A DNA stretch of 63,129 nucleotides, filler included, from Perkinsus chesapeaki ATCC PRA-425 (taxonomy: Eukaryota > Protista > Perkinsozoa): assembly GCA_013115145.1 (NCBI GenBank). It is 13 parts of 13 records of this genome, joined end to end, with 100 filler letters (N's around TTAATTAATTAA, not from the genome) between each part and the next. Parts side by side here need not be neighbours in the genome. Positions count along the whole stretch, not along the records: positions 17,282 to 31,233 come from JAAPAO010000768.1; 12 more parts are not named here. One strand, given 5' to 3'. Made by a program: the position numbers and the translations under genes. Below are positions 4,273 through 31,410 of this stretch, piece after piece. Every line of letters starts with the position of its first letter. Within the stretch, counting starts at the first letter, position 1. The notes under the pieces are model-generated. The model did no database searches and had not been told where the DNA came from. It was given only the letters and a program-made list of their open reading frames with translations.

Positions 4273-4319
4273 CTATATCGCCAACTCTGGCGTTTCAGCC
4301 GGCCTACCATCCATTGGCC

Positions 4320-4620
4320 CCCCTCATTTCCTCCTTCCCTTCTCTCTTCTTCTCTTTCCCTTCCCCTACCTTCTTCTTCTTCTCTTTCCTTCCCCTACCT
4401 TCGTTTCTTTTCTTTCCCTTCCCTACCCTCTTTTCTTTTCTTTTCTTTTCTTTTCACACACACATACATGAGTACACATCATCAGAAACCCACACAAAAA
4501 AGAAGACAGATCATCATACTCATCATCAGCGCCGACCAGCAGCAGCAGCCACAACCACAGCCACAACCACAGCCACAACCACAGCCACACACGACCACGA
4601 CAACCACAACCACAACCGCG
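4320..4620. repeat. Polypyrimidine tract, (CA)n and (CCACAA/CCACAG)n microsatellites
   Basis: Directly visible low-complexity runs. Confidence 0.85.
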
Positions 4621-4911
4621 TGTTTACAGACCCCCTCCCCCCTCAATTTCATCACTGAGCTAAAGCGCGTCTCATGTCCCTCTCGTCTCATTGCGCAACT
4701 CTCCGTCAGCCACGGGGGTCAGCCGCGTATCTTTTGTCGTGCAATTGCACGTACCAGCACGCATTCTTCAGCGTGTGATGGTCGAGTGGGGGGGCACTTC
4801 TGTGACAGAATATCATAGTGGTACAGTGTGGTGTGTGTTGATTGAAGTGGCGTGGTGCAGTCTGCTGTCAGCGCCTGTCCCCGCCGGTGTCCTTCTGATA
4901 AAGCCCAAGCC

Positions 4912-9967: not shown

Positions 9968-10229
9968 CTGCAGTGGTAGTAGCGACAGAAGATGTGGTCG
10001 TCGTGGTAGTGGAAGATGTGGTCGTAGTGGTAGTAGAAGATNNNNNNNNNNNNNNNNNNNNNNNNNNNNNNNNNNNNNNNNNNNNTTAATTAATTAANNN
10101 NNNNNNNNNNNNNNNNNNNNNNNNNNNNNNNNNNNNNNNNNTGTGCCACTCATGCACCGCTTATCTCCTTCTAACCAGACCATGTAGCCGACAACCTGCT
10201 ACCGTATCTCTGCTGTACTGTAATCATCA

Positions 10230-13200
10230 TTGCGTATCCATTCCCGTGGACCTTGGGACGCTAGTACCGCTCATCTAGTAGAGGAACGAGCCGTTGCGAA
10301 GCAATCCATTCAATACTTACCAAGTCGTTCTAAGAAGCTCCCGCCGGAAGGCTCCCCTTCGCTCGTGCATCACGACGCTGTCAACAAGCACGTTAAATCT
10401 GGTGCCGCTCAGGCAAAGATTGATAATTCAGGCCAGTGTTTGGGTATGATCGCTGGGCCATTGGATAAGGATAGGAAGATCGGGGTCTCCCGTCCATCTG
10501 ACTCTGACTTACGTCCGTCTGACTCTGACTCTAATTTACGTCCGTCTGACTCCGTCGTCTCTGGCTCACGTGACTCTGGCTTACGTCCGTCTGACTCCGG
10601 CGTCTCTGGCTCACGCGACTCTGGCTTACGTCCGTCGGACTCCGGCGTCTCCGGCTTACGTCCGTCTGACACTGACCTGCATCCATCTGGCTCTGTCATC
10701 GGCCCCTCTGGCGACACGGAAGATCTCTCGGCTGGCAATCCGGACATCCCGGGTTCAATTACCAGCACGGTGACTCTGGGAACTTCGCCCAACACTTTCT
10801 ACTTGGGCTCTGATAGTGAGTATGAGGATGTCAGCATGAATAGCGGCATCTCTCCTTCTGTATTGGAAAGGGATCTGGTGCAATGCCCAGATCTCAACGC
10901 ACGCCACTGTCCACTCCCACACCCCTGCAATGTGCACTGGGAGCGCGCACACGAGGAACTCATGGCTAGGGGTACTCCGGAAAACCGCAGCAACTGCTGG
11001 GCTGACAACTGGGAAGACGATGATCAGGAGATGCACCAATGCGCTCCTAACCCACCGGAGACTAGGCGGACCCTCTCCCCTAATAGAGTTCCGCCCCCCA
11101 AGCCTGCGAAATCCTTTGCCGAAGCCAAGGCGGTTATCCAAACCAAACGTGCGTTACGCGGAATGGCAAACCTGGCCAAAGCTGCCTTCGATGGTTTACC
11201 ACCTGCCAAGCGTCAGGTGGCCGAGCTCATCTTGTCTGAGCTCACCTCATTAATTGAGGGGCTATTCGACGACGACGACTCGAGCGACACCCCACCCCGG
11301 AGTACTGCAACTACATCACCGGTCCAAAAGCGCCCTCGTGCTACTAATCCAAGACCTGCTCCACATCAGGTGAGGGTGCTCAGCAAACGCGAGCAGAGAC
11401 GCATAGCGAGAACCAACCAGAACCAGCACAGTGCAGCGGTGTCTTCGGCCAGACCTTCGTCGACTACCACTACTGCCCCAACGAGACCTCAACCCAAGAA
11501 AGTGGCCAACAGCTATGCTAGCATTGCTCGCAATGCCGCGGCGAAAACTCCTAAACCGGTGATTATTTTACGAGGGGCTGCTGATCTCCCTGCCCTAACC
11601 CCCGTTCAGTTTGCGGAGCTTAGGGTTCAGGCACTGGATCGCCTACCTCGTTCGGTGACGGTAACTGGCGGATCTTTCCAGTAGGTAAAGCAGGTCTGGG
11701 CCTTGCGCTGGCGGATCCCAAGGACCTCGAGACCTGTCTCACTAAGCTGGACGTCTTCAATGGCCTGAAAGCGGACAGAAAGCAGACGAGACATCCCAGA
11801 GTGATTGTCTTCAATGCTGCTGTGAGCAGAAATTCGTCTCTTGCGTCCATTAATGAGGAACTAGCCTCTGCCAATCCCCAGCTCACAGCTGGCATCAATG
11901 GCACGCTAGTCTCCAACTTACATTGGCGGGGAAACCATCTCGTCCTGGCTGTTTGCCCATCTCTGTTCCAGAGGATGTTCGGAACCAGTTCTAGACGCCT
12001 TGTGTTGAACCGCTTGTCGGTGCGATACGATATTGCCCATGACGTGACAATCTGTTACCATCGTTCACGTCTGGGGCATATAAGTTCAGTGTGCAACGAG
12101 AGGGACTTGCCCCCTCATTGTTGCCGCTGTAACAAATCGCACGAACGCAATGCCTGTGCTTCATCCATTGCAGTTTGTCGTAATTGCGTGGATGCCAAGC
12201 GCGCTGTAGTTGATCACGAGGCCACTGACCTCAAAAAGTGTCCAACTGCCATAGCTTTCGCTCGTAAGCTCGCGCAGCGCACAAACTATGGGACACGATG
12301 ATCAAAGTCCTACAGCTGAACACAGGGAAGAGGCGCGAAATCTCTCATTGCGTCTTGGTGCTCCTGGGATGTCCTTCTTCTCCAGGAGCCTTCGGTACTA
12401 TTAGCCTCCCCACTCCACGAAAACCATGGTCAACGTGGCGGAGGGGCTACTATATTAACGCTCCGCGGTCTTGCAGCAACCACTGTCTTGGCCGAGAAGG
12501 ATATATGTATTATCCGGATCGCCAACGGTGGCCTGTACTTTGCTAGTGTCTATCTGCATCCTAACGATAGGGCACGACGTGAAGCATGCCTGGCACAATG
12601 GTTCGCCTTCTCGAATTCTCTTCCTAACATAAAAGGGATATTCGGTGGTGATCTCAACTGCTGGCATGAGGCCTGGGGCAACAAGTTGGTCACAAGCTCA
12701 AATGAGGCTTGTGCTGAGTGCGTCCGCGGTGAGGAAGCTCTGGATCTTATCACTCGCACTCGGGGAACCATCCTTAATGACCCTGAGGGCTACCCCTCTC
12801 CTACCTTCCTCGGAGGGCTAGGCAGAGAATCATGGGCAGATGTGACCTGGTCTGTAGGCAATGTCGGCACCGTTGAATGGGAGCTTCTCTCCTCTCTATT
12901 CACGGCTTCTGACCACCGCGCTTTGCAGACTATCCTCACTGGTACAGACATATCTTATCCAGTAGGGCTTCAGCTACACCTCACTGACCTGGAAAAGGTC
13001 AATGAGCTTGTCTTCGGTCTCCCGGAGGATGTCTCGGCGTCGGAGATCTCTACTGCTTTGGCTCAAGCAGTCGAGGAGAGTACGCCCGAGCAAATACGAA
13101 GGGACTCACCAGGCTGATAGTCCCCTAAATTGAGCCGCCTAAAGGGCTATCTGAACAAAGCGCAGCGTAAACTTCACAACGCTCGTCACAATGCGAGTGA

Positions 13201-15980
13201 AGTTGCTATTGCCTTGTGGACAGATAAGCTCAAAGCGGCCAGAGTAGATTTTCGCCAAGAGGTTAGGGCGGCCAAAGCTCGTGACAGAGCTCGCTTCTAC
13301 GCCTCTCTCGGTGACTACTCTAAATGTATTCGGCCAGCCAAAGGCCGAGGGGCTCCTGGGATCTTGAATGGAGACCCAGAGTCCAACCAGGCTCAGGTCC
13401 TCTTGGATAAGCTATTTCCGACGGACCCAAATCGAGATCGGGTTCTCGCACGCCTGAATGCTATCTCGTATTGCGATGATGGCGTTCTTCCGCCAGTGAC
13501 TGAGAATGAGGTCAGCGAAGCAATTCATCGCCTCAAGATCAGTGCACCTGCGGAGGATCAGGTTAACGCCAGGGTCGTCAAGAGCACTGCATCCATTCTG
13601 GTACCCCGCTGGACACAGGCGTTCAACACTGTGTTCCAGAACAGGGTATATCCAGAGCAGTGGCGATCTGGCAAGTGTGTAGCTCTCCCGAAGCCTGGAA
13701 GAAGTCTCCACGCACCTTCGTCGTGGAGACCAGTATGCCTCCTCAGTGTTAGCTCAAAGCTACTGGCGGAGCGCTTAATCCATGAGCTTGGGGATCACCT
13801 ACGCTCCCCAGCTCTACATGAATTCATCCGCGGGCGCAGCTGCGATACTGCCCTGCGTGATATAATTAAAGCCTACAGGGTTGGCTTGGACCGCCATCAA
13901 GATGCCGGAAAGGTTACAGCCTTGACGGCTCTTGATGTGTCCAATGCCTTTAATTCCCTTAGGCATAGTTTTATCCTGGCGGAACTCCGGCAAATGGGGA
14001 TCTCCAAATACTTGGTAGATCTCATCCAGAGCTGGCTGACCAATCAAACGGTCTCGGTGAGCTTCGGAGCGCATTCCGCTGGGATCACTCTGGAAAGGGG
14101 GGTGCCTCAAGGTTCTATACTTGGGCCCCTCCTATTTGTGGCTAGCACGATCAGCCTGTCGCGTGCGTTGAACAGGAGCTTCGAGGGAGCTACGGTGACC
14201 TCCTCCTTGTTCGCTGATGACATGACAATAGTCATCAACGCATCCGGCGTAACGGCTTTTCGTGAGGCCTGGCGCTATGTTGAGGGAAACCTCGACCGTG
14301 CCGTCGGTCGGGACTGGACATGTCTCCGGACAAGTGCTACGTCCTTTCCCCTAGGAAGCTAGCGTTCTCGCCTACCTGGCAGGGTGCGAAACTTCCCACG
14401 ACCGACACGGTGAGAGTCCTAGGGGTCTTTCTTGGCAAAAGACTGACCTTCAGGCCTCACCTGCGTAAAAAAGTATCCGAGTGCCGACGCCGGCTAGCTT
14501 GTCTAGTTGGCCTAGCCTGGGTAAGAGCTGGCATAACTCACAAAAAAGCCGCCCGTACCTACAACCAGGGAGTCTTTCCGCACTTCTCTCATGGGGTGTC
14601 GGCATGGGGAGATGTACTACACTTTTCATGGGCTCAGAAACTGGTGGACTCGGTGTCTGGTATGGCTGCGCGGATAGTGCTACGTGCTCCTCGCAATAGC
14701 TCGTATGCGGCAGTCACTATCATGGCAGGGCTCCAGCCCGCGCACATCCAACTCCTGTCCCTCCTAGAGGTTCAACGAGATTGGATGATGCCAGTGCTGC
14801 CCCTGAGAGATTGCCCTGGCAGGTACAGGGAGATGGTATGGAAGCCTGACACTCGTCTTCCTCATCCCCTTCCTCCATGGGCCCCTACTCTTGCGATTGA
14901 ACCTAGGGAGAAGGCTATAGAGCGCGCTACGGAATGCGGACGCCACTGTGCTATCTTCACAGATGGCTCCAAATTCCACGAGAGTAGCGGCGGAGGCATT
15001 ATTGCCTTCGTGCATAACAAGCCGGTACACCAGTCTTATTTCAGGCTGCCCGGTTTCTGCTCTATAGCCCAGTGTGAACTAATAATAGCCATCCGCGATG
15101 CTCTGCGGTGGCTGCGGTCTACCGCCGGTCAGTTCCAAATCTTTCCCGGAACGCGGTGGTATATATTTACTGATAGCCAAGCGGCTATCAAGTCCTTGGG
15201 CCATCGGCACTCGGTTGAGAGATGCGCGCTCGCCAGGGACATTACGGTACTATGCCAAGGCATCAACGTATCTATCCGTTGGTGTCCTGGCCACGAAGGA
15301 GTCGATTGTAACGAGCTTGCTGACCAACTACCTAACGTTGGGAGGAAGCAACTCTACCCCCTAGCTCCTGACGTTCCTCCCCGCCTATCCCGATCTTTTC
15401 TGAAGCGAAGAGCTAAGGAGAAAGCGGAGGAGCTAACTCGCCAGTGGTGGTGCTTGATTCGTCCCAGATTGGGAGCCACTGTGCGTGAATTCTTTTGGCC
15501 ATTTGGTCATGCTCGCCGGTTCGTGGCAGCTTGCCATACGACCCAAGATGTTTCGGCCCTGCTCTTAGGACACGCGCCGACTCCTCATATGAGACACGTC
15601 CAAGGCCTGCTCCCGGGCCCCCTTGCGGCGCCGAGGACGGTACGACGATGCACTACATCAGGGACTGTCCGCTGCTAGACGGCGCACGCAAAGCGTCAAA
15701 TCTTTACGTTCCCAAGTACTTGTACAAGTACTCGGTGGACCCTAAGCTACGTGGATCCCTGGTGACTATGTGCAAATATGTATTTGAACTGCTGGAGAGA
15801 CTACGGCACTCAGATACCTTATCTTGATATGGTCCCTACCGCTGTCATCGTTTTCCGGTAGTAGGTAGCCAAGCGTCTGGCCTTCGGGCTTACTTTGATA
15901 CCTGTCCATCATGCAGATGGCAGGTCGGCCAGAGCACAGTACAGTGCAATGGCTTTAGTGGCTGGTGTGGCATCACTCAG
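10230..15980 (+). mobile_element. Second non-LTR retrotransposon (ORF1 + APE-RT-RNaseH-CCHC), degenerate with several frameshifts
   Basis: ORF1 pieces at 10230-11684 and 11801-12301 with Cys/His knuckles. ATGA overlap at 12298-12301. APE at 12298-13117 (SVYLHP, GDLNC.H..WG, SDHR). RT at 13130-14362 (WRPVCLL, LDVSNAFN, GVPQGSILGP, FADD). RNase H at 14320-15678 (FTDGSK, FTDSQAA, WCPGHEG). CCHC tail to 15827. Confidence 0.93.
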
Positions 15981-16265
15981 TGCTCCAGCACTTGTATTAT
16001 TTTCAAGGATCGGCGGCATCGAGACCTCTTCTTGAGGTGTTGCAGGATCCATTAAATCTGGTAAACCGACCCACTAAGGATTGGTATAGGTGATGATGGA
16101 TAATAATAAGATTTCCGGAAGTCGTTCTCAAGTCCGAGTGAAAAGAGTCTTCCGATGCGCGTATATCCATACTTATCAGTGCATTTAACCGCAGGAGACT
16201 TCTATCCCTCGGGTCCGCCGTGCAAGGCCGAGAGAAATAGAGTTGGGCATGGCTTGCGGCGCAGT

Positions 16266-17281: not shown

Positions 17282-17420
17282 TTATTGTTGTTATTGTTGT
17301 TATTGTTGTTATTGTTGTTATTGTTGTTATTGTTGTTATTGTTGTTATTGTTGTTATTGTTGTTATTGTTGTTATTGTTGTTATTGTTGTTATTGTTGTT
17401 ATTGTTGTTATTGTTGTTAT
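17282..17420 (+). repeat. (TTGTTA)n microsatellite in the first visible CDK intron
   Basis: More than 20 tandem hexamers ending just before the TAG acceptor at 17424-17426. Confidence 0.95.
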
Positions 17421-17426
17421 TATTAG

Positions 17427-19038
17427 ATATCAAAGAACTGAGAAAAAGCCACTTGGTGAAGGTACATATGGTGAAGTATATAAAGCTAGATGTCAATCAA
17501 CTGGATTAATAGTTGCTATGAAAAGAATGAAGTAATAGTAGTATTAATAATAAGAAGAAGTATGTTGTTATTACTATTATTATTAGGTTAGACCAAGAAG
17601 ATGAAGGTGTACCATCAACAGCTATAAGGGAAGTATCATTACTTAAGGAATTAAAACATACTAATATTGTTAAACTATTAGATGTATTTTGTAGTCATAA
17701 AAAACTGTAATATATCATGATAATTAATATTATATTATTATTACTATCAGATATTTAATATTTGAATTTGTGGATTTAGATTTAAAAAAGCATATGAAAC
17801 AGATTGGTGGGTTAACTAAAGATAAAGTAATATATATAACTATTATTATTGTTATTATATTTCATTAGCAGGTACAATCATTTGCATATCAGCTTCTTCT
17901 TGGTACTAATTATTGTCATGAATATCGTATTATACATAGGTATAATAATAATAATAATTTATTATTATAATATGACATGATAATAATGGGATATTAATTA
18001 TTATTCTATTCTTAGAGACCTTAAACCGCAGAATTTACTAATTGATTCTAATGGTACACTTAAATTAGCTGATTTTGGATTAGCTAGGGCTTTTAGTTTA
18101 CCAATACCAAAATATACACATGAAGTAATAATAATAATATTATTATAGTAGTANNNNNNNNNNNNNNNNNNNNNNNNNNNNNNNNNNNNNNNNNNNNNNN
18201 NNNNNNNNNNNNNNNNNNNNNNNNNNNNNNNNNNNNNNNNNNNNNNNNNNGTATGTACTGCTACTGTTATTATTATAATAATATTATAGTAGTATGTACT
18301 GCTACTGTTATTATTATAATAATATTATAGTAGTATGTACTGCTACTGTTATTATTATAATAATATTCAGGTTGTTACTGTATGGTATCGTGCACCAGAG
18401 ATATTATTAGGGAGTAGCAAGTAATAATGACATGAATGAGAATGACATAAATGACTATGATGATATAATAGATATTCTATACCTATTGATAATTGGTCTG
18501 TTGGTTGTATATTAGCCGAAATGGCTACTAATACACCATTATTCCCAGGTGATTCAGAAATAGATACAATATTTAGGTAATAGTAATAATACGTATAATA
18601 ATAATATTATTAGTGTATTCATCATTAGGATATTCCGTAAATTGGGAACACCTAATGAATCAATATGGTGTGGTATAAGATCATTACCTGATTTTAAAGA
18701 TACTTTCCCACAATGGCGTCCTAGAGGTTGGGAGAATATACCTGGTTTAATGGAAAAATTAGGAGAAGCTGGATGTGATCTATTATCAGTATTAATAATA
18801 CAATATATATTAATTATATAATTATTATTAGATGTTCTTAACATATAATCCAGCTGATAGATTATCATGTAAAAGAGGTTTAGAACATGTAATAAATATA
18901 ATTCATCTTAATAATATACATTATTATCAGCCATATTTCGCAACATTGGACAAGAAACAATTCAATTATAATGATGATAAAGGGATATATAAGATATCAT
19001 CTGATGATGATATAACAGATATAGATAGGAGAGAATAA
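17427..19038 (+). CDS. cdc2: PSTAIRE cyclin-dependent kinase (CDK1/cdc2-like), 10 visible exons, 5' end off-contig
   Basis: GT-AG exons at 17427-17531, 17587-17706, 17751-17826, 17872-17939, 18016-18124, 18371-18420, 18472-18576, 18629-18788, 18832-18888 and 18931-19038. They splice in frame to [50 protein letters not shown] and GDSEID. Confidence 0.95.
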
Positions 19039-21062
19039 TAATAATACTACTACTTTGGTATTAATATTGGAAATCGTATATATTTATCATTAAATACTCA
19101 GCATGCTTCCATTAATTTATATTATTATTGAGTTTTCACAAGTATTTGAATAACGTTAATTGTATAACGTTACTCTATTGCGGCAACACAACGCAATACG
19201 AAAACGTGACTTTCGTCGTCGTTTCTCGTTTGTTGGTCTTACATGAATTATTGTTATTAACTCGATAAATTTAATGATTATGGAAAAGTATCAGAACTGG
19301 TAATTAGTAGTAGTAGTAAGTCATTTTCGTTGTTTATGACGGTAACGACATAAAGAATGAGAAGATATATTGCATCAATAACAAACAACAGCAGCAATCC
19401 AACAGCAACAACCAATAATGCTACTATAAGCGGCAACAGGCAAACAACAAGGAATACTTATAATAATATATTCAGCAAAAATATATCATTAAAGCAGAAG
19501 TTGCTGGCAGCAGCAGAAGCAGAGTATGGTAGTGGTTTAGTTGTTTATTGAATTTGGAATAGTTGTGCATTATTAATATAAATGCAATTATTATTGAGTG
19601 AAGGAACAGTAATAGTAACAGCAGCAAGTACAGTAAGAATATTAGTATAATATATTAACAATAACAATATTTATTACAATAATCTGCTGTTATTGCTTAC
19701 TTAATAGCCAATAAATGGGTCATAATGTTGATGATGATGCTGCTAGTGACAAGATACTACTACACGACACCGCTAAGCAACCAATTAACCATTTTTTACG
19801 AGAATCACTATTATCATAGGATAGATAGTATTAAGGATACTATCATCATTCACGGATTATAATAATAGTGAAAGTATCAACAGAATAGCCATAATGTAAC
19901 AGTAAACAATAGAAACAACAATACTAATAATCATTATTGTTATTGTCATTACTATACTAAAAGTACGCCTAACAATTATGATAATAATAATAGGCCACAC
20001 TAAAATCGGCAATTATGCCGCGCAAACGAGCAGCAGCAGCAGTAACCACAAGAATAATAACTGAAGCAACATCATCGCAAAAGATACTAAAATCTACTTA
20101 ATACTACTACTTGAAGTAATATTACTTAAATAACATTACTTAAAGTAGTAATATAGTAGATAATAATAAATAAGCGGCACAAGAAGCTTAAAGTTATCAG
20201 TACTACTGCTGGTATAGGGATCAGTCGAATAAATGTTAGTAGGAAGAGTAAGAAACGAGGAATAAGAAGAAGAAGAATGGTTAACATTATTATCGTTACG
20301 ATTATCATCAGTTATTAATCGTAGTAGTAGTTGAAGTTCAGAAGAAGTAATTACTAATAATAGTAGTAGTAATAGTATACAAATCACTATTGGGTTGTGT
20401 ACAACTAAATTACAATTTAACTATTATTCATGTACTTCTAGACATCACTATTTTACATATACAGTCGAAGCAGCAGCAAGAACAACAACGAGTAGTAGCA
20501 GTAGTATCCGATACCAATGGTAATATATATAGAGATTACAAACTAACGGCAAAGACGGAATCAATTATTATTACGACTATTGTTAGAGTACTTGTTAATT
20601 AAAACCGCTCATCATCAGTTATATAATCAATAATAATAACAACAATAATAAAATCATCAGATAACACGATAATGATATAAATTATTATTATCATTATTAC
20701 TGAGCCAAACCATCTCCTATGGCTATACTACTTGTATTAATATCAGATACAATAGAGATAAAGACGACAACAACAATAATAATAGTATTATCACTAAGAG
20801 CAACAATAGTCGCATTATTAGTAATAAGAGCAATAATCATTATTATTGATATGTAAAAGTAAAGAGTTAGTTGACCGACAAACGGATGGTGGCAAATATC
20901 CATTATTGATTATTATCATTATAAAAGCTTGTTTTATACACTTGTTGATAATGATAATGCTGCTAATAGATAAAGGGAAAAAGGAGGAGGAGGATTATTA
21001 TAGTAGTAATAAGTAGTAGTAGTGATGAGAGTTGATTAATAATAATATAATTATTAATAATA

Positions 21063-23105
21063 CTATACTCTAATACTATTATCATCACCCTCTAATGCAT
21101 TAATTCTGGTATTAGTAGTATTATTATTATGAGCTTGTAGTGTTGGCACGGATGATGATGATAACGATGATCTGATATCATTTTCTACTCCTTCCTCCAT
21201 TGATAGACCATTTTCATTAATATTCTCTTCCTCTATTGTTCTTGCTGTTGCAGTAGTAGTAATAATACCATCATCTCCTTTACCACCATAGTCGTCATAA
21301 GTATCATCGTCTTCAGTAATAGTAGATGACTTCTTACTTATTTCTTCTTCCTCGGCTTCTATATCAACTATACTTCCTATATCAGTTACATTGTCCTCCT
21401 CCTCGTCATTATTATTATCTTCCTCTTCTTGACGCTTCTTAGCTTCACGATCAATGCGATTGAAATAGGGCATTAATGCTAAACACATCAACGCACCTAA
21501 TACACATATACCAGCCAATAATAGGTAATAATAATCATAATGTGAACCATATAACATAACAGAATTAGGATAATCTGATGGTGTAAAATCAGGCATCCAA
21601 GGGGAACAAGCTTGGAATATAGCACCAGCAATAAAATTAGCTATTGCAAAGAATAATAAGTTAATTGCTGATGATACAGCTTTTAAGTTACTTGGTGAAT
21701 ATGTAAATGCCACTTCATATGATGTTGATGTTAAGAATATTTCACCAGCAGCAATAACCCAAAATTGTGGTACTTGCCACCATACAGATACAGTATATAA
21801 TGGTCTATACATAACAGCATATTCAACAGCTAATGATAATAATAATGAAGCAGCACCCATTAATGAACCAACACACATACGTGTTAATACTGACCACATT
21901 TTATTCTTAGATCTTAACCATGAATATAATAAACCATCTATTAATAATGAATTTATTATAATAGCAACACTATCAATATTTTGCATTAATGCTGCAGGCA
22001 TATCCCATCCAAATGTATCTAAATTCATTTTCTCAGCTTGTGTTAACCATGCTGTAGTCATTTGATCATATGCGATAGTAAATGGTATTATAATAGTAAA
22101 TAATGGTATTAAACGAAATATTTGTTTAGCATCTTCAATAAATCTATCTTCAAATGGGCCACCATTACTCTTTTTACATTTTTCTAATGATAGCTTATAA
22201 GTTGCATAACCAATAACTTTACATACCTCTAATACTGCTGAACCTTGTGGTTTAGGTTTAACAAATCTTCCCATAATACCACCATATAAGAATACAGCAG
22301 TAGCAATAATGAATGCAAAGAATGGCACCAGATAAGCAACAAAGAAAGAGACATCTTCAACTAATATAGGTGTTACTATACCACCAACAAGTGCACCAAT
22401 ATTAATACTTGAATAGAAATATGTAGATAATCTAGTAATTAATGCTTTATGTAATTCAGGATGAAATTGCTGAGCACCCATAACATTAACACAACTTTTA
22501 ATACCACCACTTCCCAGTGTAATTAATACCATTAATGATAAATGTACCATCCATGGTTGACATAATCTTGGTACTGATGCAACACAAAATAATGCTAAAC
22601 CAATAATATATACCACTGAGAATATAAGTATAGTATTATATACTCCCAACCATGTATCAGATAATACAGCTGCTATTAATGGTGTAACATATATAATGGC
22701 TTGAAAGTCAGCAATATAAGTGTTAGCAGATGAATCAGAATAACCAAGATTAACCTTGAGGAATGTTTGTAAATTGGGTGTTAAACCATAAAATGCTAAA
22801 CGCTCACACATTTCTTGTAATAATACAAATATTGTTGCTTTCATCATAGGATGCTCATAATAATGATAAGTGTTACCATTAGGGTCCGTCCACGATAATG
22901 GTTTATCAGCATCAGTAACCTTTAAATGGAAACAACCACCACCACAACATTTACGAACACCACCATCACCACCACCAATATCAACATCATCATTCTTCTT
23001 GTTGTTGATAATACTATTGCTGCTGCCGCTGCTGCTGCTGCTACGGGTAGTAGTTTTTGTACTCTTTGATGATTGTTGATGATTATTATTAAAGAGTCCT
23101 TTCAT
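21063..23105 (-). CDS. POT/PTR2-family proton-dependent oligopeptide transporter, intronless
   Basis: EMCERLAFYG (ExxERFxYYG motif), LGSGGIKS, YFYSSINIG, about 12 hydrophobic segments and low-complexity termini. Confidence 0.93.
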   Translation of the reverse strand: MKGLFNNNHQQSSKSTKTTTRSSSSSGSSNSIINNKKNDDVDIGGGDGGVRKCCGGGCFHLKVTDADKPLSWTDPNGNTYHYYEHPMMKATIFVLLQEMCERLAFYGLTPNLQTFLKVNLGYSDSSANTYIADFQAIIYVTPLIAAVLSDTWLGVYNTILIFSVVYIIGLALFCVASVPRLCQPWMVHLSLMVLITLGSGGIKSCVNVMGAQQFHPELHKALITRLSTYFYSSINIGALVGGIVTPILVEDVSFFVAYLVPFFAFIIATAVFLYGGIMGRFVKPKPQGSAVLEVCKVIGYATYKLSLEKCKKSNGGPFEDRFIEDAKQIFRLIPLFTIIIPFTIAYDQMTTAWLTQAEKMNLDTFGWDMPAALMQNIDSVAIIINSLLIDGLLYSWLRSKNKMWSVLTRMCVGSLMGAASLLLSLAVEYAVMYRPLYTVSVWWQVPQFWVIAAGEIFLTSTSYEVAFTYSPSNLKAVSSAINLLFFAIANFIAGAIFQACSPWMPDFTPSDYPNSVMLYGSHYDYYYLLLAGICVLGALMCLALMPYFNRIDREAKKRQEEEDNNNDEEEDNVTDIGSIVDIEAEEEEISKKSSTITEDDDTYDDYGGKGDDGIITTTATARTIEEENINENGLSMEEGVENDIRSSLSSSSVPTLQAHNNNTTNTRINALEGDDNSIRV

Positions 23106-24139
23106 AATGTATTTGTTATTCCTTTTACTTATTAGTAATAGTCACTTTATTATACTTCTTATGAAGATTGAAGAATAATGATGAATGGAATAACAACAAC
23201 AACAACTACCAACTAAAAAGACTATAATATAAACTATCACCACTAACAATAATAATACAACTAAGAAGAACTAGTGCTAGAACGGGGGTAGACAATTAGA
23301 AAGGGGACAATTATTGTGTTATTAGCTGTAGTAGTAGTGATGATGACGGTGAGTAGCACCTGTAGTAGTAGTAGCAGAGGAGATAAAGGAGGAGGATAAA
23401 AGTAAAAGTAGGCGAAATATATAAATGTATATACTATAATAATAATAACAATGATGATGATGACCTTGATCATCATCATTATCCTTAAACAGTACAAGTA
23501 ATAGCGGTTGTTGTTGTTGTTGTTATTATTATAGCCTATAAGATATAATAATGTTTGTTATTCTTCGTTATGTGAAATATATATTGTGATACTATAAGTT
23601 GTAGTAGTAAAAGACGAGATAATATATTATAACACTGAAGGTAAATTAATAATAGGGGACAGCTATTGTGTTATTGAATATAAGCTATTTGGTAAACTAC
23701 CATAATAATAAACAACAACAACAACAACAAGGAAGACGACGAGGACCTAAGAAGGAATTGAACCAAACACATTTATATCTCTGATAATGATGGTAATAAC
23801 AACACTACATTAACACATACAACAGCAGCATGATTATGATTATTATTAACAATAACAACAACAAAGATTGGTAATAATAATAATTGGTATACATGATATT
23901 ATAATAAAGTGTTGTTATTATTATAAAAGTTAATACCTTTCATTCTCATCATCATTGTCGTGGTCGTGGTGGTGCTTGTGGTGGTGATTCACTATTGAAT
24001 AGTACGAGATGACCTTTTATCGTTAATGATGATGATGATGTATTATTATTATGTTTATATAATTGATGATGAATCATTTCCTTTGTATTTATTACTGATG
24101 ATTGTAGAAGATGATGATGTAATATCATGCGATAATATT

Positions 24140-24600
24140 TATGTTGATAAATTATTATGCATAGTCTTATTGTTATTATTATTATGCATAGTCTTATTGT
24201 TATTATTATGCATAGTCTTATTGTTATTATTATTATGCATAGTCTTATTGNNNNNNNNNNNNNNNNNNNNNNNNNNNNNNNNNNNNNNNNNNNNNNNNNN
24301 NNNNNNNNNNNNNNNNNNNNNNNNNNNNNNNNNNNNNNNNNNNNNNNNTGCATAGTCTTATTGTTATTATTATGCATAGTCTTATTGTTATTATTATTAT
24401 GCATAGTCTTATTGTTATTATGATAATAAAACTACTGCTACTACCCTTCTATAATAATGATAATATAACTACTGCTACTACCCTTCTATAATAATGATAA
24501 TAAAACTACTGCTACTACCCTTCTATAATAATGATAATAAAACTACTGCTACTACCCTTCTATAATATTGATAATAAAACTACTGCTACTTTTAGTTTAT
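24140..24600. repeat. AT-rich minisatellites (ATGCATAGTCTTATTGTTATT units and AAAACTACTGCTACTACCCTTCTATAATAATGAT units)
   Basis: Tandem copies visible on both sides of the scaffold gap. Confidence 0.85.
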
Positions 24601-26457
24601 TAGTTTTATTTAATTTATTTATATTATCATATCCTTTTGTTATACTATTATTCCATCCTCCTCCTCCTCCACCATTATTATTATTACTACTAGTACTATC
24701 TTCATTACTACATGGACTATTTCTTATTATTATATTACATCGTCTTCTTTTTAATTCATTATTAATCCATTTATATATATTATTTATTGATGATAATATC
24801 ATCATCTTTGATATATCTTTATTTATCTTGTTATCTTTACTACTACCAATATTATTCATTCCTCCTCCTCCTCCTCCTCGTAATCGGGTTATTGGTCTTT
24901 TGTATGATTTATTATTTAATCTATCATTTAATAATAATGATGATGATATATCACCCCATGATAACAACAACGATGCTGTTGTTGATGTTGATGATGATGA
25001 GAATAACCATGAATGTGACCACAGTGAGGGGGTTGATGTTGATGATGATGAGAATAACCATGAATGTGACCACATTGAAGGGGTTGATGTTGATGATCTT
25101 GATGTGTTGGATTTATTATTATCCCTCTCGACTTCATCCTCATCTTTTCTATATTTTTCTTCTTTTTTATTATTTTTGTTTAACTTACTTGATAATAATA
25201 AGTTATCAATACCAACAATACTTAATGCTTCTCTAATAACCTATTAATAACAATAATAATATTATTACTATTAATAATATATATAATATACCACCACCTT
25301 ATTTTTAACATTATAATCTAATGTACTCCCTTCTGTTGGAAATGATGGTGTATGATTAACCTCTATTAACCCTTTAGACAGACATAATGATAATAGTAAT
25401 AATAATTGACTATACCAACTATCAAGACAATTATTATTATTATTACTACTACCATGGTTTAAGTTTATAATCTATTAATATATCTATACCAAGTATCTCA
25501 TATGACACATTACTATGTATATCATCAATTTGACAACTATGATTTATATGTGATAACGAGGGTTGTACTGATATTAATGTTTTTATTATTGCATCCTAAA
25601 ATGATAATAATAAATGATCATCATGATGATAATGATATTTAATATCATTTACTATCACATTAATCATTATTATTACATTTATATCATTCTTAAGTTTATC
25701 AATATCATGACCAAGTGATTGCAAATATTTATATAATGCTTTTAATGATCTCCAATGTCCACAATGTATCTAATTATTATTATTCTTAATAGTAACAATA
25801 AGAATACATGCAATGATTATGATAGTAGTAGTAATAGATTAGTATTATTATTACATTATCCGGATTAATATTCTCTTCATATTCTGGATTTTTACAGTTA
25901 ATAGCATAGTTAGTAAGATGCATTGGTGTTTTATTAATATTCTTATTATTAGGTTTTATATATGGTGTTGTTGCTAATCTTACCAAACCTTCTTTATGTA
26001 AAAATATACGTAAGGGATCGCAACCTTCATATTATTATTATTAATACTACCTGTTATTAAAACATATAATCTTATATCAAATTTATATCCATCCAATAGT
26101 AAAGGTTTATGAATATATTTTTGGGCAGTTAAACTATTGAGTGTCATTGTTCTTGTTGGTCTCGTTGATGATAATAAGTAATCCCTGATGAGTGATGATA
26201 TATTATTAATATTTAATCTAATAAGAAATATTCCCTTACCTAATAACAACAACAAGCACCAACTGATTGGTTAATAATAATATTATCAATGTTCAAACTG
26301 CTACTACTACTACTACCTTGCGCTCCATTATCTGGTTTAATAATATATGTTTTATTATTATTCTTTGTTCTTGTTGTTGTTGTTGATGATGTAAATCGTG
26401 ATTTGAGATCATTCAAATCAGCTGGTAATATCCAAGTTTCCGGGAAAAAGCTGTAAC
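24560..26457 (-). CDS. Tubulin-tyrosine ligase-like (TTLL6/13-type polyglutamylase), multi-exon, 5' exons missing
   Basis: Spliced reading gives [107 protein letters not shown]. The 3' end is approximate. Confidence 0.9.
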
Positions 26458-26514
26458 CTAATAATAATAGTCATTTAGGAGTTGTTAAGTTATTGAGGGA
26501 ACACAACAATTCAA

Positions 26515-26536
26515 CTTGAGCCAAGATGGCTACAGT
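26515..26536 (-). other. Full-length spliced-leader copy ACTGTAGCCATCTTGGCTCAAG inside the LTR
   Basis: 21/22 identity to the Perkinsus SL as I recall it (ACCGTAGCCATCTTGGCTCAAG), with one C>T at a CpG. It is followed by TT, not the GT donor of an SL-RNA gene. Confidence 0.88.
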
Positions 26537-26565
26537 ACTAGTAGACCTCTCCTCTAGAGCTTCTC

Positions 26566-26570
26566 ATATA
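26566..26570 (-). promoter_or_regulatory. TATA-like box (TCTATATGA) in putative U3
   Basis: TATAT starts 34 nt upstream of the first SL base. The argument is positional only. Confidence 0.35.
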
Positions 26571-26673
26571 GAACACCTCTCTGAACCTCTTAACAGTGAT
26601 AGCTAACAGCAAGAGCACTGCCTCTTGCACTCTTGCTAGTCTGACAATGATATCAGTAAATAATCCTCAACAA

Positions 26674-26684
26674 CTCGCTCCCCC
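26674..26684 (-). other. Polypurine tract
   Basis: GGGGGAGCGAG, 1 nt before the LTR TG. Confidence 0.75.
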
Positions 26685-26694
26685 AAGGTGGCGG

Positions 26695-29357
26695 CTATAG
26701 AGCAGACACCTTCCTCATAGAGTCTTCAGTGAGGCGAGCGGGAGTTTCTAACCTCAACGCAGAGACCTGTCGCGGAGACACTGTGACAGTCACAGGGATC
26801 TCAGGAGGGCCTCCGATCCTCAAAACACCGTCGGCAGTGAAGTACATAGGCACCACAGTGCAACGGTCCTCTAGAAGCTGGTGTTCATGAACCAGTAATA
26901 GATCATCATTAGTCCACGAAAGTTTAGCACCAATTTTCACTTTGCCATCAGTGTCCTTCCAAGCCACAAAGGGGGGCTGGTAGAGACAATCTTGATTCTC
27001 TGTTTCTCTGGGGGACTATCTGATTAGAGTAATGATGACATAGACGTATTATGACCTCTTTTGGTTGACTTGCACTGCCTCATTTTCAGCCTTCTCCTCA
27101 GCTGACTCAATATAAGATTTTAAGTGATCTTTATGAAAGACTTGACGTGTGCCATTAGCCAATTCAACCTCATAACATTGACTTCCAATGGGATTTAATA
27201 TAGTGCCTCGGATCCATTGGGAGTCTGACTTATGCTGCGGTCTCTGATAGACATAGACCGATTGTCCTCGAGCGTAATCTTCTCGAACCTTAGGACCAAC
27301 AGTCGCTGCTCTCGTTCTCGTCCACGCATCAGACCAAATACTTAACAACTATCTACGGCGACGATCTAAGCGTGCAACTTCAGAGAGCACAGACTTCACT
27401 CTGGTCTTATTCGGGTAAGACACGAAATCCAAGATATCTCCTGGCTCCTTGGTGCTAGCCTTGATCGACATATCAAATGGCAAGGATAGCCTATAGCCGA
27501 AGATAACCTCGTGTGGAGAGATGCCAAGTTCTGAATCTGGCATGGAATTAAGCCTTCCCTCCACAATAGATAATAGGTCCGTCCAAGATACTCGATCCTG
27601 ACCATGATATTTCAATAAACGTCGTAGTGAGTCAACTAATGTTCGATGCTGTCGTTCATATCCTCCACCAGATGAGGGATGACCGGTAAAGTTAAATGTT
27701 TTATAAGATATAAACAGCACAGCGAATCAAACTTAGGGCTCAACGTAAACTGGCGTCCCTGATCAGTTAAGATAACAGACGGACAACCATACCTCAGAAA
27801 TATCTGCCATTCTACAACTTTGCAGATAGAGTTCGCACTGATGTTACTCAAAGCCTTTGAATCAAAGGAAATAAAAGAGTAAACTTACTTGATAAATCAG
27901 TGCAAGTCAACACCCATCTGTGACCCTCTCTGTCTGGAACCATCGGTCCCACTAAATCTAAGCCGAGTACTTCAAATGGTGTAGAGGGGGTCCAGAGGTG
28001 TGACTCATGCTGATAAACAACTGGGGAGGTTGAACGCTGGAAGACAGCCTCGAATAAATGTTTTGATATCAGCACGACTACGAGGCCACCAGAACAAACG
28101 GCACATATAACGATGAGTAGAATTCACCGCTGGGTGCCCTCTAAGTTCATGATAATATACTATGCTGTATATCTACTCACTTAATGAAGAATGACTGATT
28201 AGTGTAATGACAGAATGATACAGATATATTCAGCATCTTAAACTCTGCAATAATACTATCCGTGCAATCACGGATACGTCTAGTTATCAGCCACTCTATA
28301 CCTTTCAGTTTCTTCTCTGGACCTCTCATTCTTCTCACAGCAGTAAAGGAATCATTTCCAACCTCAATAGATTTAAGACATAACCACCATCCAACTTCCA
28401 TTTGGCATATACATGTCATAGCTTGTAAGATTGCATACATTTCTCGACGATTTGCATGCCAAGCCTCAGCTCTATCCGGAAATAAATGGCTTTCCCCATA
28501 AATAGATACCCATCTCTTCTCTCTCTTCTCTCCTGCTCCCCAGCTATATGCACCATATAAATTTTTTGTAGGAGACCAAATTTCATAACTATATCCTTTG
28601 GAGGATGCATCAGTAAAGATGCGAATATGCTCAATCTGAGATACAAGTGGTACCTTGGGCCATAATATTTTAGCAGCAGTCAAATGATCATGGCATTGTT
28701 TTGCCGTTGCCTCGGATAATGGCTCATCCCATGTATTTGTTGCTTTGCCAGCAAGTTTACGGACGACATCACAATGACCTCGACATTGTGACTCTGCCGA
28801 GCTCTTAGTAAGCTCTAAAAATTTCCCTGCTTTGGCAAAACAACTCCTCTTAGTATAAATATCATCATCGAAATCAATCTTGGGACGAGTCATTGTGAGA
28901 TTGCCAGAGATACTATCCCAATCTCATAATACACCAAGCCATTTTTGTGGTACATTTTTATCCCAAATACGTTTTTCCAGTGGTATTTCAAATCCACATA
29001 ACGCAAGTAATTTAAACATATCCTGATTCCAGGCCATTCGTTCCTCATAACTATTAGATAGTATTAGGAAATCGTCCATAACTCTTATAACACGTATATT
29101 AGGATGGCGACACCTAAGGATACTCATGAGGATGTCGACGACTCCCTCTAGGGCTGCCGGCCCAGAGGCTAGCTCGAAGGCTAGCCCGGTGGCCATGAGG
29201 GTATTGTAACCACAATCAATAAGTAAGGTGCGACATATAGCAAGGCGATAATACGCCTTACTGAGATCCATCTGCGCTATGATAGATGTGGAGGTTAATA
29301 CTGCCTGCAGCTGCTGGATAGCCTTGTGGGTGGAGTTGCGGCGATTTGAAGAATTTG
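26695..29357 (-). pseudogene. Decayed LTR-retrotransposon pol (RT - RNase H - integrase - SH3-like - extra C-terminal ORF)
   Basis: RT: QMDLSKAYY, RVMDDFLIL (28924-29370). RNase H: IFTDASSKGY, WHANRREMYA, GNDS (28177-28893). Integrase zinc-finger-like FWWP..DIKTFIRGC near 28050-28130, then GLDLVGP, ILTDQGRQF and GGYERQHRTL in frameshifted pieces at 27349-28075. SH3-like segment at 27049-27348. Confidence 0.88.
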
Positions 29358-29437
29358 GTGTACCAGTCAAAAGTCAAAAATTCCGTGTACGAGTTTCATG
29401 TGTACGTAATTTATGTGTACCAATCGTTATACACCCG

Positions 29438-30627
29438 CGGCAGCACCACAGCCTACCACAAGCCTACAAGGAACTGCCGTGTCCCACACTACGCCAAGCT
29501 CAAGCTCAAGATCGAGATCGAGATCAAGGAACCCCCGAAGGCAGAGGCCAGAGACCGACGAGGGCACTGGGAACGACCAAGGTAAGAACTTCCTCCGCAA
29601 GTTCGTCAATCGGGAGAGGAAGAGGAGGAGGACAAGGCCGATGAAGCCACCGCAAACCGCCTACAAGAGCTAAAGGAAAGCATAGGATTACTGGACCCGG
29701 AGCTGCTCCCACCGAAGCAAACCATGAAGCGACTACTAGGGCTCAAACGAAAAAGCAAGACAGGCCCTGTCTGACAGGGGTGCTGACAGATTTCGTAGAG
29801 CTCAAAAAGCTCCTCCCACCGTCGGTGGCGTCGAACCAAGATCCGGGAGTACCTCACACACTCTCCATACAAGCCATGGGCATAGCGTACGTGCTGACAG
29901 GCACGTGGAGTGCCTCACAGATGCTGCAGTACACAAACACAGTACTGAAAATCGCTGCAAGCGATGGGTGGGCAGTAGCTGTCCACTACGATGCGGTAGT
30001 CCGCAAAAGATGGGTCGCCCGTTCTCTAGCAGAAAGCTGGGCCAAGCTACCCGGAGAGCAGACTGCGCTGGACCGGCAATCCCTTGACCAAGCCCGAGGG
30101 CTCTCAAGGAGGCGCGGCGGACAAACGGGAGGGCAAACGGCGACTAGGGCGCCGCAGAGGCGTGACATAGCGATGAAAGAGGGCCTCTGCATCTGCTTCA
30201 GCAAGGACGGACAACGAGGATGCCCAAAACTGGCCGGCGCGTGCAAGTACCACCACAGGTGCGGGATATGCAGATCACAATTCCACGGCACGGCTCAGCA
30301 CAGATTCCCCCAACAAACCCAAGATGCCGGCAAGCCCACCCAAAGTGGCGCAACTCCCGGAAAACCATACATTCCACAGGGCGGCCCAAACAGAAACGCC
30401 AACTAACCAACTATTACCCCAAAGGCCCCAGCCCAGCAGGGGAAACAGTGACGGTTATGCGGGGGCCCCGCAGAACACACCGTCTCCGACTCCGGGGGCA
30501 CCCAGGGACTAGACGAGGAAAGGCTAACCCAAATACTGGGACACATGGATGAGGCCAGACTAACACCCATACCTAATATGGCAGCGGAACGGGACAATGG
30601 GGAGCTCACTGCCCAGCTACGCTACAT
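29438..30627 (+). pseudogene. DIRS/Ngaro-like gag fragment (main ORF 29780-30406) plus start of an overlapping ORF
   Basis: GWAVAVHYDAVVRKR segment and a C-terminal CICF..C..CKYHHRCGICRSQFH finger. Both sides end at the repeat-array elements. Confidence 0.6.
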
Positions 30628-30975
30628 GGGGTATTCATGTCCCATACACCGAAAACTCGTACACCTTCGACTCATGTCTCGAATACTCGTACATTTACGA
30701 CCCGTACACCGAAAACCAATACACTTTCAACTCGTACACAAAATACCTATACACTGTAAACTCATACACATAATACTCATACATCGAATACTCGTACACA
30801 TAATACCAGTACATTTTAAACTCGTACACAGAATACTCGTACACTTTCAAGTCGTACACCGAAAACCCGTACACTTTCACTTCGTTCACACCCCCACTTT
30901 TAACCCGTACACCGTCATTTCGTACACTTTGCGAAAATTTTTTAAGGCAAGTCGCGGAGCCGCTCCGCGACTTTT
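30628..30975 (+). mobile_element. End of a DNA-transposon-like element: GGGGT terminus, array of CTCGTACAC motifs about 15 nt apart, and GC hairpin
   Basis: About 18 degenerate (CTC)GTACAC copies from 30645 to 30927. The mirror-image end ...GTGTACGAGACATGATACACCCC is at 31334-31406, and a related short version is at 29358-29437. Confidence 0.6.
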
Positions 30976-31410
30976 CGCGAAGCCCTTCGCGCCGGCCTCG
31001 CCGGCCACGCACCGCCGGTGGGCTTCTTACCCAAATGAGCCAATTTCCACGTTCTCCGGGGGAATTAAACCCGGGACCTCACGGTTGATAGCCTTGGACA
31101 CTAACGTCTACGATACATCTGCAACATAGAAAAATTACAGTCGATTTGCCGAGTTTGCCAGCATGCAACACTCAAATGCGGCACATGAAATAGTATTCCA
31201 GGTATGCTACTTCGGAATGGAAATTCGACATGGNNNNNNNNNNNNNNNNNNNNNNNNNNNNNNNNNNNNNNNNNNNNTTAATTAATTAANNNNNNNNNNN
31301 NNNNNNNNNNNNNNNNNNNNNNNNNNNNNNNNNGAGTATTCAGTGTACGGGTGGTGAACGAAGTGAAAGTGTACGAGTTTTCGGTGTACGAGACATGATA
31401 CACCCCACTG

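Follow-up and report, generated by a model that had tools for sequence, protein, structure and literature searches.

A host spliced-leader exon conserved within the long terminal repeats of Ty3/gypsy-type retrotransposons in Perkinsus

Introduction

A tie between retroelements and the spliced leader (SL) of the host exists in SLACS, CZAR and CRE of trypanosomatids and in NeSL-1 of nematodes, which are elements without long terminal repeats (non-LTR elements) that insert into SL-RNA genes without carrying the leader themselves, and Slamovits and Keeling reportedly described, in 2008, relic spliced leaders of retroposed genes in dinoflagellates. The Ty3/gypsy element Cer1 of C. elegans has only its 2.4-kb spliced subgenomic RNA trans-spliced to SL1, whereas its 8-kb genomic RNA is not (PMC3315495). 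In the trypanosomatid L1Tc/ingi non-LTR elements, the internal promoter Pr77 yields translatable transcripts without trans-splicing (PMC1874656, PMC8190864). Here we analyse a 63,129-nucleotide (nt) stretch of DNA from the Perkinsus chesapeaki ATCC PRA-425 assembly GCA_013115145.1 (hereafter the window, taken at its full length), in which the part from JAAPAO010000768.1 (positions 17282–31233) holds a decayed LTR retrotransposon with a copy of the host SL exon inside its LTR, and we compare this element with relatives in Perkinsus.

Like the relic SLs of dinoflagellates and Perkinsus, the leader copies in these LTRs are exon-only SL sequences in DNA that derive from reverse-transcribed trans-spliced RNA. 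Unlike relic SLs, they lie at a fixed offset inside both LTRs of an autonomous element and belong to its own replication unit, are full length rather than 5′-truncated or tandem, and have been kept across three species and two deep lineages. The tie to the host SL is shared with SLACS, CZAR, CRE and NeSL-1, but the Perkinsus elements have LTRs, varied insertion sites and a leader copy of their own. Cer1 is likewise a Ty3/gypsy-type LTR element in a trans-splicing host with some of its RNAs given the host leader, although no SL1 copy is reported within it (PMC3315495). Pr77 is comparable as an element-borne 5′ module in a trans-splicing host, and would be a functional analogue of a leader encoded in cis, but its sequence is unrelated to the host SL.

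In overall build the Perkinsus elements are ordinary Ty3/gypsy-type (Metaviridae) elements, with the order gag (zf-CCHC), protease (PR), reverse transcriptase (RT), RNase H (RH) and integrase (INT), an Integrase_H2C2 domain, TG..CA LTRs, 5-bp target duplications, a primer binding site (PBS) and a polypurine tract (PPT). They depart from Ty3/gypsy elements in general by their short LTRs (183–211 nt), by a single gag-pol open reading frame (ORF) that starts at or inside the LTR or PBS, and by the host SL in the LTR; it is the conserved host leader inside the LTR that is new. More than 100 exon-only SL copies, many of them in tandem and starting with T, have been found in P. marinus and judged not to be SL-RNA genes (PMC3101222), and ‘numerous 22 nt SL sequences’ are mentioned for Perkinsus elsewhere (PMC2868825), yet neither paper ties these copies to LTRs. 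We found no description of an SL embedded in an LTR in the full-text literature searched (Repbase lay outside the search). A first-pass annotation of the window had noted it as an arrangement not known to have been described.

Results and discussion

The leader copy in the window LTR

The central leader bases are TCTT in Perkinsus and TTTT in dinoflagellates, and leaders of other perkinsozoans, such as Parvilucifera and Maranthos, are 25–28 nt long. The published 22-base leader of P. marinus, PmaSL1, reads ACCGTAGCCATCTTGGCTCAAG (PMC3101222, PMC9399869). A match to it lies among the following minus-strand features of the window; U3, R and U5 denote the unique 3′, repeated and unique 5′ regions of an LTR.

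26483–26672, minus strand: 3′ LTR of 190 nt with TG..CA ends, starting TGTTGAGG and ending ...CTTAACA
26515–26536, minus strand: copy of the host SL exon, ACTGTAGCCATCTTGGCTCAAG, matching PmaSL1 at 21 of 22 bases
26534–26536, minus strand: SL bases 1–3 (ACT), hypervariable, the putative U3/R junction
26483–26514, minus strand: 32 nt 3′ of the SL copy, by position presumably the rest of R plus U5
26566–26570, minus strand: TATAT, tentatively a TATA-like element, ending 29 nt 5′ of the SL copy
26674–26684, minus strand: PPT, GGGGGAGCGAG
26695–26697, minus strand: pol stop codon, TAG

The pol stop, PPT, TGTTGAG start of the LTR, TATAT, SL copy and CTTAACA end all lie where the first-pass annotation had put them. 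Its LTR interval of 26483–26684 is right at the 26483 end, whereas the other end took in the PPT and has to be moved to 26672. The SL copy begins 137 nt into the LTR, differs from PmaSL1 only at base 3 and is followed by TT, the annotation having correctly observed that no GT donor is present. Within the window the 22-mer ACTGTAGCCATCTTGGCTCAAG occurs once, even with up to three mismatches allowed, and matches to it were found in 0 of 100 dinucleotide shuffles of the sequence.

A second copy of the 190-nt segment was looked for in the window piece and not found, and only one LTR is present there. Its identification as an LTR, proposed in the first-pass annotation, is borne out by relatives: the segment aligns end to end with the paired 183–187-nt LTRs of P. 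olseni elements, and the sequence preceding the PPT is nearly identical to that of one of them (L001, below). Matching 5-bp target duplications, a PBS and a PPT occur together in two elements of the clade, L001 and L006. The window copy is a dead, 5′-truncated, single-copy element of Ty3/gypsy type that consists of a 3′ LTR and a decayed pol.

At the outer end of the window LTR the GC content drops from ~41% to ~25%. Contigs of DNA runs from two studies cover 26320–29380 without differences and at single-copy depth, although these runs may themselves be the source of the assembly. Since the contigs of both studies agree at the join between the element and its AT-rich flank, this join is unlikely to be chimeric.

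Relatives carry the leader at the same place

Our sample covers six insertion sites from two deep lineages and three species, with the window organism counted apart from P. chesapeaki. Outside the window, we read the SL in ten more LTRs, in the same relative place and in both members of LTR pairs. They are spread over five insertion sites: P. olseni L001/L004 (L004 being the L001 site as seen in a different isolate), L002, L003, L005, and P. chesapeaki L006. A lack of the SL in other copies, which the first-pass annotation had named as a result that would undo its reading, was thus not observed. Every LTR of the clade that was read contains an exon-only copy of the host SL. The copies lie ~135–150 nt from the LTR start and 28–52 nt from the LTR end, in LTRs of 190 nt in the window, 183–187 nt in P. 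olseni and 211 nt in P. chesapeaki L006, and in the full-length relatives the gag-pol start codon follows 16–29 nt 3′ of the leader. Both LTRs were seen in three elements (L001, L002 and L006), two of which retain intact gag-pol ORFs of ~1,900 amino acids (aa): L002 with 1949 aa and L006 with 1844 aa. The flanks at the five sites are all different.

The 238-aa RNase H piece of the window served as query in an exhaustive profile search. One close relative was returned, a 998-aa P. olseni protein with 62% identity, whose contig is L001. The LTRs of L001 form a 183-nt direct repeat (660–842 and 6744–6926, 99% identical) with the ends TGTTGAG...CTCAACA and a 5-bp target duplication, GCCCG. The PBS TGGTACCCGATGCAGGAT lies two bases past the first LTR, the PPT GGGGGGCCGAG lies ahead of the second, and the leader copy in each LTR is AACGTAGCCATCTTGGCTCAAG.

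Other members of the 90% protein cluster to which the L001 protein belongs led to L002–L005. L002 (P. olseni JABANP010000359.1) is a full-length element with LTRs at 9817–9999 and 15873–16058 (~96% identical), its 1949-aa ORF starting two bases past the LTR and encoding RVT_1, Integrase_H2C2 and rve in that order. No matching target duplication is present at L002, where the 5-bp flanks are TGGAC and TATAC, and this copy is probably a recombinant between two insertions. The ~4–5% difference between the LTRs within 9817–16058 includes leader bases 1–3 (ATC versus AAG) and a 3-nt indel past the leader. L003 and L005 each provided one 3′ LTR, with different flanks and with the leader in both loci. 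In L001 and L002, the 28-nt interval from the leader to the end of the LTR also holds a short upstream ORF (ATG TTG CGT TAT CTA TAA; e.g. L002 9972–9999), which precedes the gag-pol ATG overlapping the PBS and is absent from the P. chesapeaki and window copies.

A search with the RT–integrase region found L006 (JAAPAO010000289.1), a distant P. chesapeaki relative with a polyprotein 31% identical to that of P. olseni over 1,838 residues. Its two LTRs of 211 nt (5826–6036 and 11570–11780) are 100% identical, have TG..CA ends and a target duplication (CTATT), and are accompanied by the PPT GAGGGGGCGAG and the PBS TGGTGGTCGATGCAGGGC. The intact ORF encodes zf-CCHC (residues 406–423), a protease (490–578), RVT_1 (885–977) and Integrase_H2C2 (1374–1426). 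Both LTRs contain TCTGTAGCCATCTTGGCTCAAG, and the gag-pol ATG is located 16 nt past the leader, within the LTR.

Across the clade, a PBS beginning TGG lies 2–3 nt past the LTR (TGGTACCCGATGCAGGAT in P. olseni, TGGTGGTCGATGCAGGGC in P. chesapeaki) and a G-rich PPT stands ahead of the 3′ LTR in the window, in P. olseni (GGGGGGCCGAG) and in P. chesapeaki (GAGGGGGCGAG); no primer tRNA matching the PBS was found in the fetched loci. A TATA-like TTATTATC is present in P. olseni at a distance 5′ of the SL similar to that in the window, and nothing comparable is seen in P. chesapeaki. With paired LTRs, target duplications, PBS, PPT and the order PR-RT-RH-INT, these elements are LTR retrotransposons of the Ty3/gypsy type.

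In the DNA runs, a related LTR contig of 107 nt at ~7 times single-copy depth covers 26528–26634 at ~84% identity, and in another related LTR contig indels occur at 26537 and 26541, immediately 5′ of the leader. From the few related LTR contigs in these runs, the family is present at low copy in the window organism too.

The leader copy is neither an SL-RNA gene nor an unrelated relic

In Perkinsus SL-RNA genes the leader is followed by the donor G|GUAG and an intron of ~60 nt (PMC3101222), and such a gene would be expected to end in a T tract. We rejected an SL-RNA gene as the identity of the LTR copies, which lack a GT donor and an intron; the bases next to them are TT or TC, and the sequence then continues to the end of the LTR and into the PBS. 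A search for known RNAs gave neither an Rfam match nor a tRNA. The copy is exon-only and therefore comes from spliced RNA by way of reverse transcription, not from a captured SL-RNA gene. A relic SL of a retroposed host gene was likewise rejected, as the SL lies in both LTRs of complete elements and, in the window, 3′ of pol. The first-pass annotation had named an SL-RNA gene or an unrelated retrocopy as an identity that would undo its interpretation, and neither applies.

A broader explanation of this kind would have the match arise from a captured SL-RNA gene or promoter, from the relic SL of an abutting retrogene, by chance, or through a chimeric assembly. The window locus on its own gives it some footing, in that the SL is on the 3′ side of pol, a place at which a retrocopy unrelated to the element might in principle start, and the flank differs greatly in GC from the element. 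Against it stand the missing donor and intron, the position inside both LTRs of complete elements, the absence of matches in the shuffles, and a junction that shows no differences in the DNA runs of two studies (possibly the assembly source) and is flanked by Perkinsus-like genes; we consider this explanation very improbable.

A true relic leader, TCCGTAGCCATCTTGGCTCAAG, is present beside L002 at 16073–16094, separated by 14 nt from the 3′ LTR and by 22 nt from a following gene of 1090 aa. It is followed by GG rather than GT and keeps CC at bases 2–3, unlike every LTR copy.

Two other Perkinsus retroelement families, examined as negative controls, have no SL copy. The first is a clear LTR element with 300-nt LTRs that adjoins L002, where the best match to the SL is 12 of 22 bases, at chance level; the second is a third P. 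olseni family (L012), SL-less and with poorly defined ends. A P. marinus relative (L008) is represented by a 404-aa fragment only, and neither LTRs nor an SL lie near it. Contigs of ~8.2–8.5 kb from three independent data sets (L009–L011; JGI 3300035190, ENA ERZ28008711 and Logan SRR11069761) encode the same 2678-aa polyprotein, a distant relative of the window RNase H piece, and have 124-nt terminal direct repeats and 56% GC. Neither a Perkinsus nor a dinoflagellate SL was found in these environmental contigs. Pattern scans for an LTR with an SL gave 0 matches in JGI metagenomes (two patterns) and IMG/VR, which probably contain little or no Perkinsus DNA.

Conservation of the leader within divergent LTRs

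SL bases 4–22 (GTAGCCATCTTGGCTCAAG) are identical in all 11 LTRs read, nine of which are in the LTR alignment. Outside the leader, LTR identity is 57% between the window and P. olseni, and 34% between P. chesapeaki and either of them, which is close to unalignable. By a simple estimate that takes positions as independent, identity at 19 of 19 SL bases would arise by chance with a probability of ~1e-9 at the 34% background. Bases 1–3 behave differently from this core: the window copy has ACT there, the P. chesapeaki copies have TCT, and AAC, ATC, AAG, ACT and ACG all occur in P. olseni; the canonical ACC is found in no LTR copy. When five distinct P. olseni LTRs are compared, 19 columns out of 187 are variable. 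They include all three columns of SL bases 1–3 and four columns directly past the leader, and none of them falls inside bases 4–22.

This pattern bears on the possibility that the SL is an inert fossil, left by a trans-spliced RNA that was once reverse-transcribed and since then passively inherited with the LTR, having no function today. Retroposition does commonly leave exon-only SL copies behind in the genomes of Perkinsus and dinoflagellates, with more than 100 reported in P. marinus (PMC3101222). However, a neutral 19-mer would not stay identical while the LTR fell to 34% and pol to 31% identity, and the variation in P. olseni clusters directly on both sides of the core and never inside it. 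A fossil without function is accordingly improbable in our estimation, and our best reading is that the leader is retained because of a function.

The perfect identity to the host SL could also be explained without long-term selection if each lineage had captured the SL independently and repeatedly, its shared position then being a matter of convergence. Against such recurrent capture, the bases beside the SL are common to the deep lineages, with TTGCGTT after it and GGTTCT.AG before it in the LTRs of both P. olseni and P. chesapeaki, and the PPT and PBS are also alike between these species. We deem repeated capture, if anything, even less probable than a fossil; because the neighbouring bases are shared, we favour one ancestral arrangement. 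Tandem or partial SL relics were not found in the LTRs read.

A proposed role for the leader as the start of R

We propose that the SL copy is the 5′ part of R, that it entered the lineage once, and that it is renewed today by trans-splicing, and we assign this reading as a whole a probability of about 0.5. The genomic RNA would then begin with SL sequence, and minus-strand strong-stop DNA, ending in the SL complement, would land on the copy of the SL that transcription of the 3′ LTR provides; each new element would thereby receive the leader in both of its LTRs. Entry may have occurred when a trans-spliced element RNA was reverse-transcribed a single time, an origin that would explain why the copy is intron-less. 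At present, transcripts that start upstream, in U3 or by host read-through, would be trans-spliced at the AG that ends the SL copy of the LTR, and bases 4–22 would be re-copied from the genuine host SL in each cycle. Such re-copying could account for the full identity of these bases across divergent elements without selection on every one of them. Bases 1–3 would escape renewal and drift, as RT may stop short of the modified 5′ end or copy it badly.

The leader is read as the start of R because it sits late in a short LTR, near the PBS and the gag-pol start, and because its first bases are a hot spot of variation, as would be expected where a reverse-transcription template ends; this hot spot indirectly supports the position at the U3/R boundary proposed in the first-pass annotation. 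The short distance from the SL to the gag ATG resembles the leader of a trans-spliced mRNA. Reverse transcription of SLs has been reported to stop preferentially near the 5′ end, possibly as a result of 5′ modifications (PMC2868825, PMC7245778). The longest leader in P. marinus expressed sequence tags measures 13 nt, for which the authors blame such modifications (PMC2868825), and ~70% of full-length Polarella reads begin at leader base 2 or 8 (PMC7245778).

In a stricter form of this proposal, the SL would be the R repeat and trans-splicing would be required to make genomic RNA. Any read-through of the 5′ LTR would be cut and capped at the SL-terminal AG with no need for a precise promoter, SL homology would guide first-strand transfer, and the leader would be renewed every cycle. 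We advance this form tentatively, as somewhat less probable than its negation.

The principal alternative is that the leader is encoded in cis as a mimic, with transcription starting at or within the first SL bases and no trans-splicing involved. Selection would then keep the 19 bases, possibly by way of translation, export or treatment as a normal mRNA, and the SL would again be part of R. This alternative is consistent with the TATA-like motif that ends 29 nt 5′ of the window SL and has a P. olseni counterpart about as far from the leader, with the T|A pyrimidine–purine step at SL base 1 in both, and with LTRs that lack tandem or partial SL relics. Bases 1–3 are moreover copy-specific and non-canonical even in the youngest element, as if inherited rather than renewed. 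However, identity at 19 of 19 bases over a 34% background exceeds what selection for leader function usually requires, and the TATA-like motif is not kept in P. chesapeaki, on which ground a start site predicted from it was rejected. Both mechanisms, a leader encoded in cis and one fixed from a trans-spliced RNA and then reused, had been put forward in the first-pass annotation, and both fit the data. We regard a cis-encoded mimic as unlikely, although less so than any other alternative considered here, and renewal by trans-splicing as the most likely present mode by a modest margin, our lean towards it resting on the all-or-none conservation of the SL.

Several points weigh against our proposal as a whole. 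The limits of R in these LTRs are predicted only. Full renewal predicts ACC in young copies, whereas L006, with LTRs that are 100% identical, reads TCT, and the proposal thus needs the extra assumption that bases 1–3 are copied incompletely or with errors; the relic SL beside L002 keeps CC at bases 2–3. A U3 of only ~135 nt would also need to accommodate an outron with its branch point. The sample of sites, species and lineages is also small. Finally, contigs of two probable RNA runs match the window element only at 26500–26545, that is, over the SL and ~10 nt on either side, and no U3 or pol match, or anything else specific to the element, was found among the RNA-run contigs. A match confined to the SL is expected, because any trans-spliced mRNA population would give it, and it confirms that abundant RNAs of the window organism carry a leader close to the SL sequence in the window.

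In two probable RNA runs (X6 and X7), contigs of 289 and 586 nt over 26513–26545 consist of unrelated sequence, ...CTTGTTGAGAA, TCTACTAGT-like bases and the leader. Judged from their 30-nt loose-end consensus sequences alone, the LTR start (TGTTGAG) appears to be joined almost directly to the leader, possibly as an internally deleted mini-LTR or a read-through transcript.

Implications

The conserved leader suggests that the Perkinsus elements of this clade have tied the start of their RNA, and probably their copying, to host trans-splicing. The RNA of an LTR retroelement lacks the identical ends that every new copy must regain, and it is R that makes their restoration possible. If a host leader has been adopted as the start of R, it would represent both a new solution to the recreation of ends and a new dependence of a mobile element on host RNA processing, and if the stricter form of the proposal is true, these would be the first LTR retroelements with replication mechanistically coupled to SL trans-splicing. 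Some, at least, of the many intron-less SL copies in Perkinsus genomes could be explained by the arrangement. The clade, in which P. olseni and P. chesapeaki each have apparently intact members, is a candidate source of RT for mRNA recycling and, should the stricter form hold, could plausibly have supplied the RT activity that gave rise to the SL-tagged retrogenes of perkinsids. As bases 1–3 are non-canonical in every genomic copy, the 5′ ends of RNAs can distinguish cis-encoded from trans-spliced leaders.

Pol remnant, truncation and host flanks of the window element

The remaining features of the locus are as follows.

26698–29358, minus strand: decayed pol remnant with part of RT, RNase H, integrase and a C-terminal tail (Pfam, blastx)
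29351–29437, no strand assigned: boundary of a high-copy repeat, at which the element loses its 5′ part (contig depth, contig breaks)
25983–26470, minus strand: fragment of a tubulin-tyrosine-ligase (TTL) family gene in the host flank (Pfam TTL, profile positions 42–127)

In the pol remnant, Pfam places RVT_1 within 28924–29370 and rve within 27636–27851, with RVT_1 upstream of rve. Frameshifts, stops and an internal deletion are present, and the integrase motifs are scattered over different frames. By blastx, 29358–26698 corresponds to residues 886–1949 of the 1949-aa P. olseni polyprotein at 46–71% identity, with residues ~1296–1463 absent and three frame changes; no pol homology to this intact relative was found beyond 29358. 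Summed contig depth rises to ~4,300–5,600 at 29351–29437, compared with 65 on the element, and contigs break there. The high-copy repeat replaces gag, protease, the start of RT and the 5′ LTR of the window copy. Look-ups of the window ORFs as exact proteins, meant to extend the contig, gave no record.

The sequence that stands in place of the 5′ part of the retroelement, 29351–31233, is a different, GC-rich repeat (52–59% GC). It contains a 15-nt tandem array with units like GTGTACGAGTTTTCG at ~30632–30930, an inverted copy of the unit at 29380–29420, and a plus-strand ORF of 208 aa (29780–30406) that is rich in Cys and His and has no Pfam match.

On the other side of the element, the TTL fragment opens a few codons past the LTR end, just after an in-frame TGA and on the strand that also carries the element, and the first ~41 positions of the TTL profile are absent where the element sits. 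The TTL gene appears either to contain the element and the other repeat or to have been disrupted by them, and the window LTR with its leader points into the remaining TTL exons.

Further along the host flank, 21063–23105 (minus strand) encodes an intact POT-family transporter that shares 72–88% identity with proteins from P. marinus, P. chesapeaki and P. olseni; as this transporter is Perkinsus-like, the leader in the window is of the host's own kind. At 680 aa it is longer than its counterparts of ~520 aa in other Perkinsus species. The host DNA from 17282 to 26482 has only 19–35% GC and AAT/AAC-type repeats throughout, yet its genes are clearly Perkinsus-like. By comparison, GC amounts to 41–45% in the retroelement remnant and ~47% in the fetched P. 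olseni loci, a contrast that reflects either an unusually AT-rich species or region or an element that arrived recently or from elsewhere. Within the AT-rich flank, a run of Ns (a scaffold gap) at ~24251–24348 falls inside a tandem repeat of 27-nt, TATGCATAGTCTTATTGTTATTATTAT-like units.

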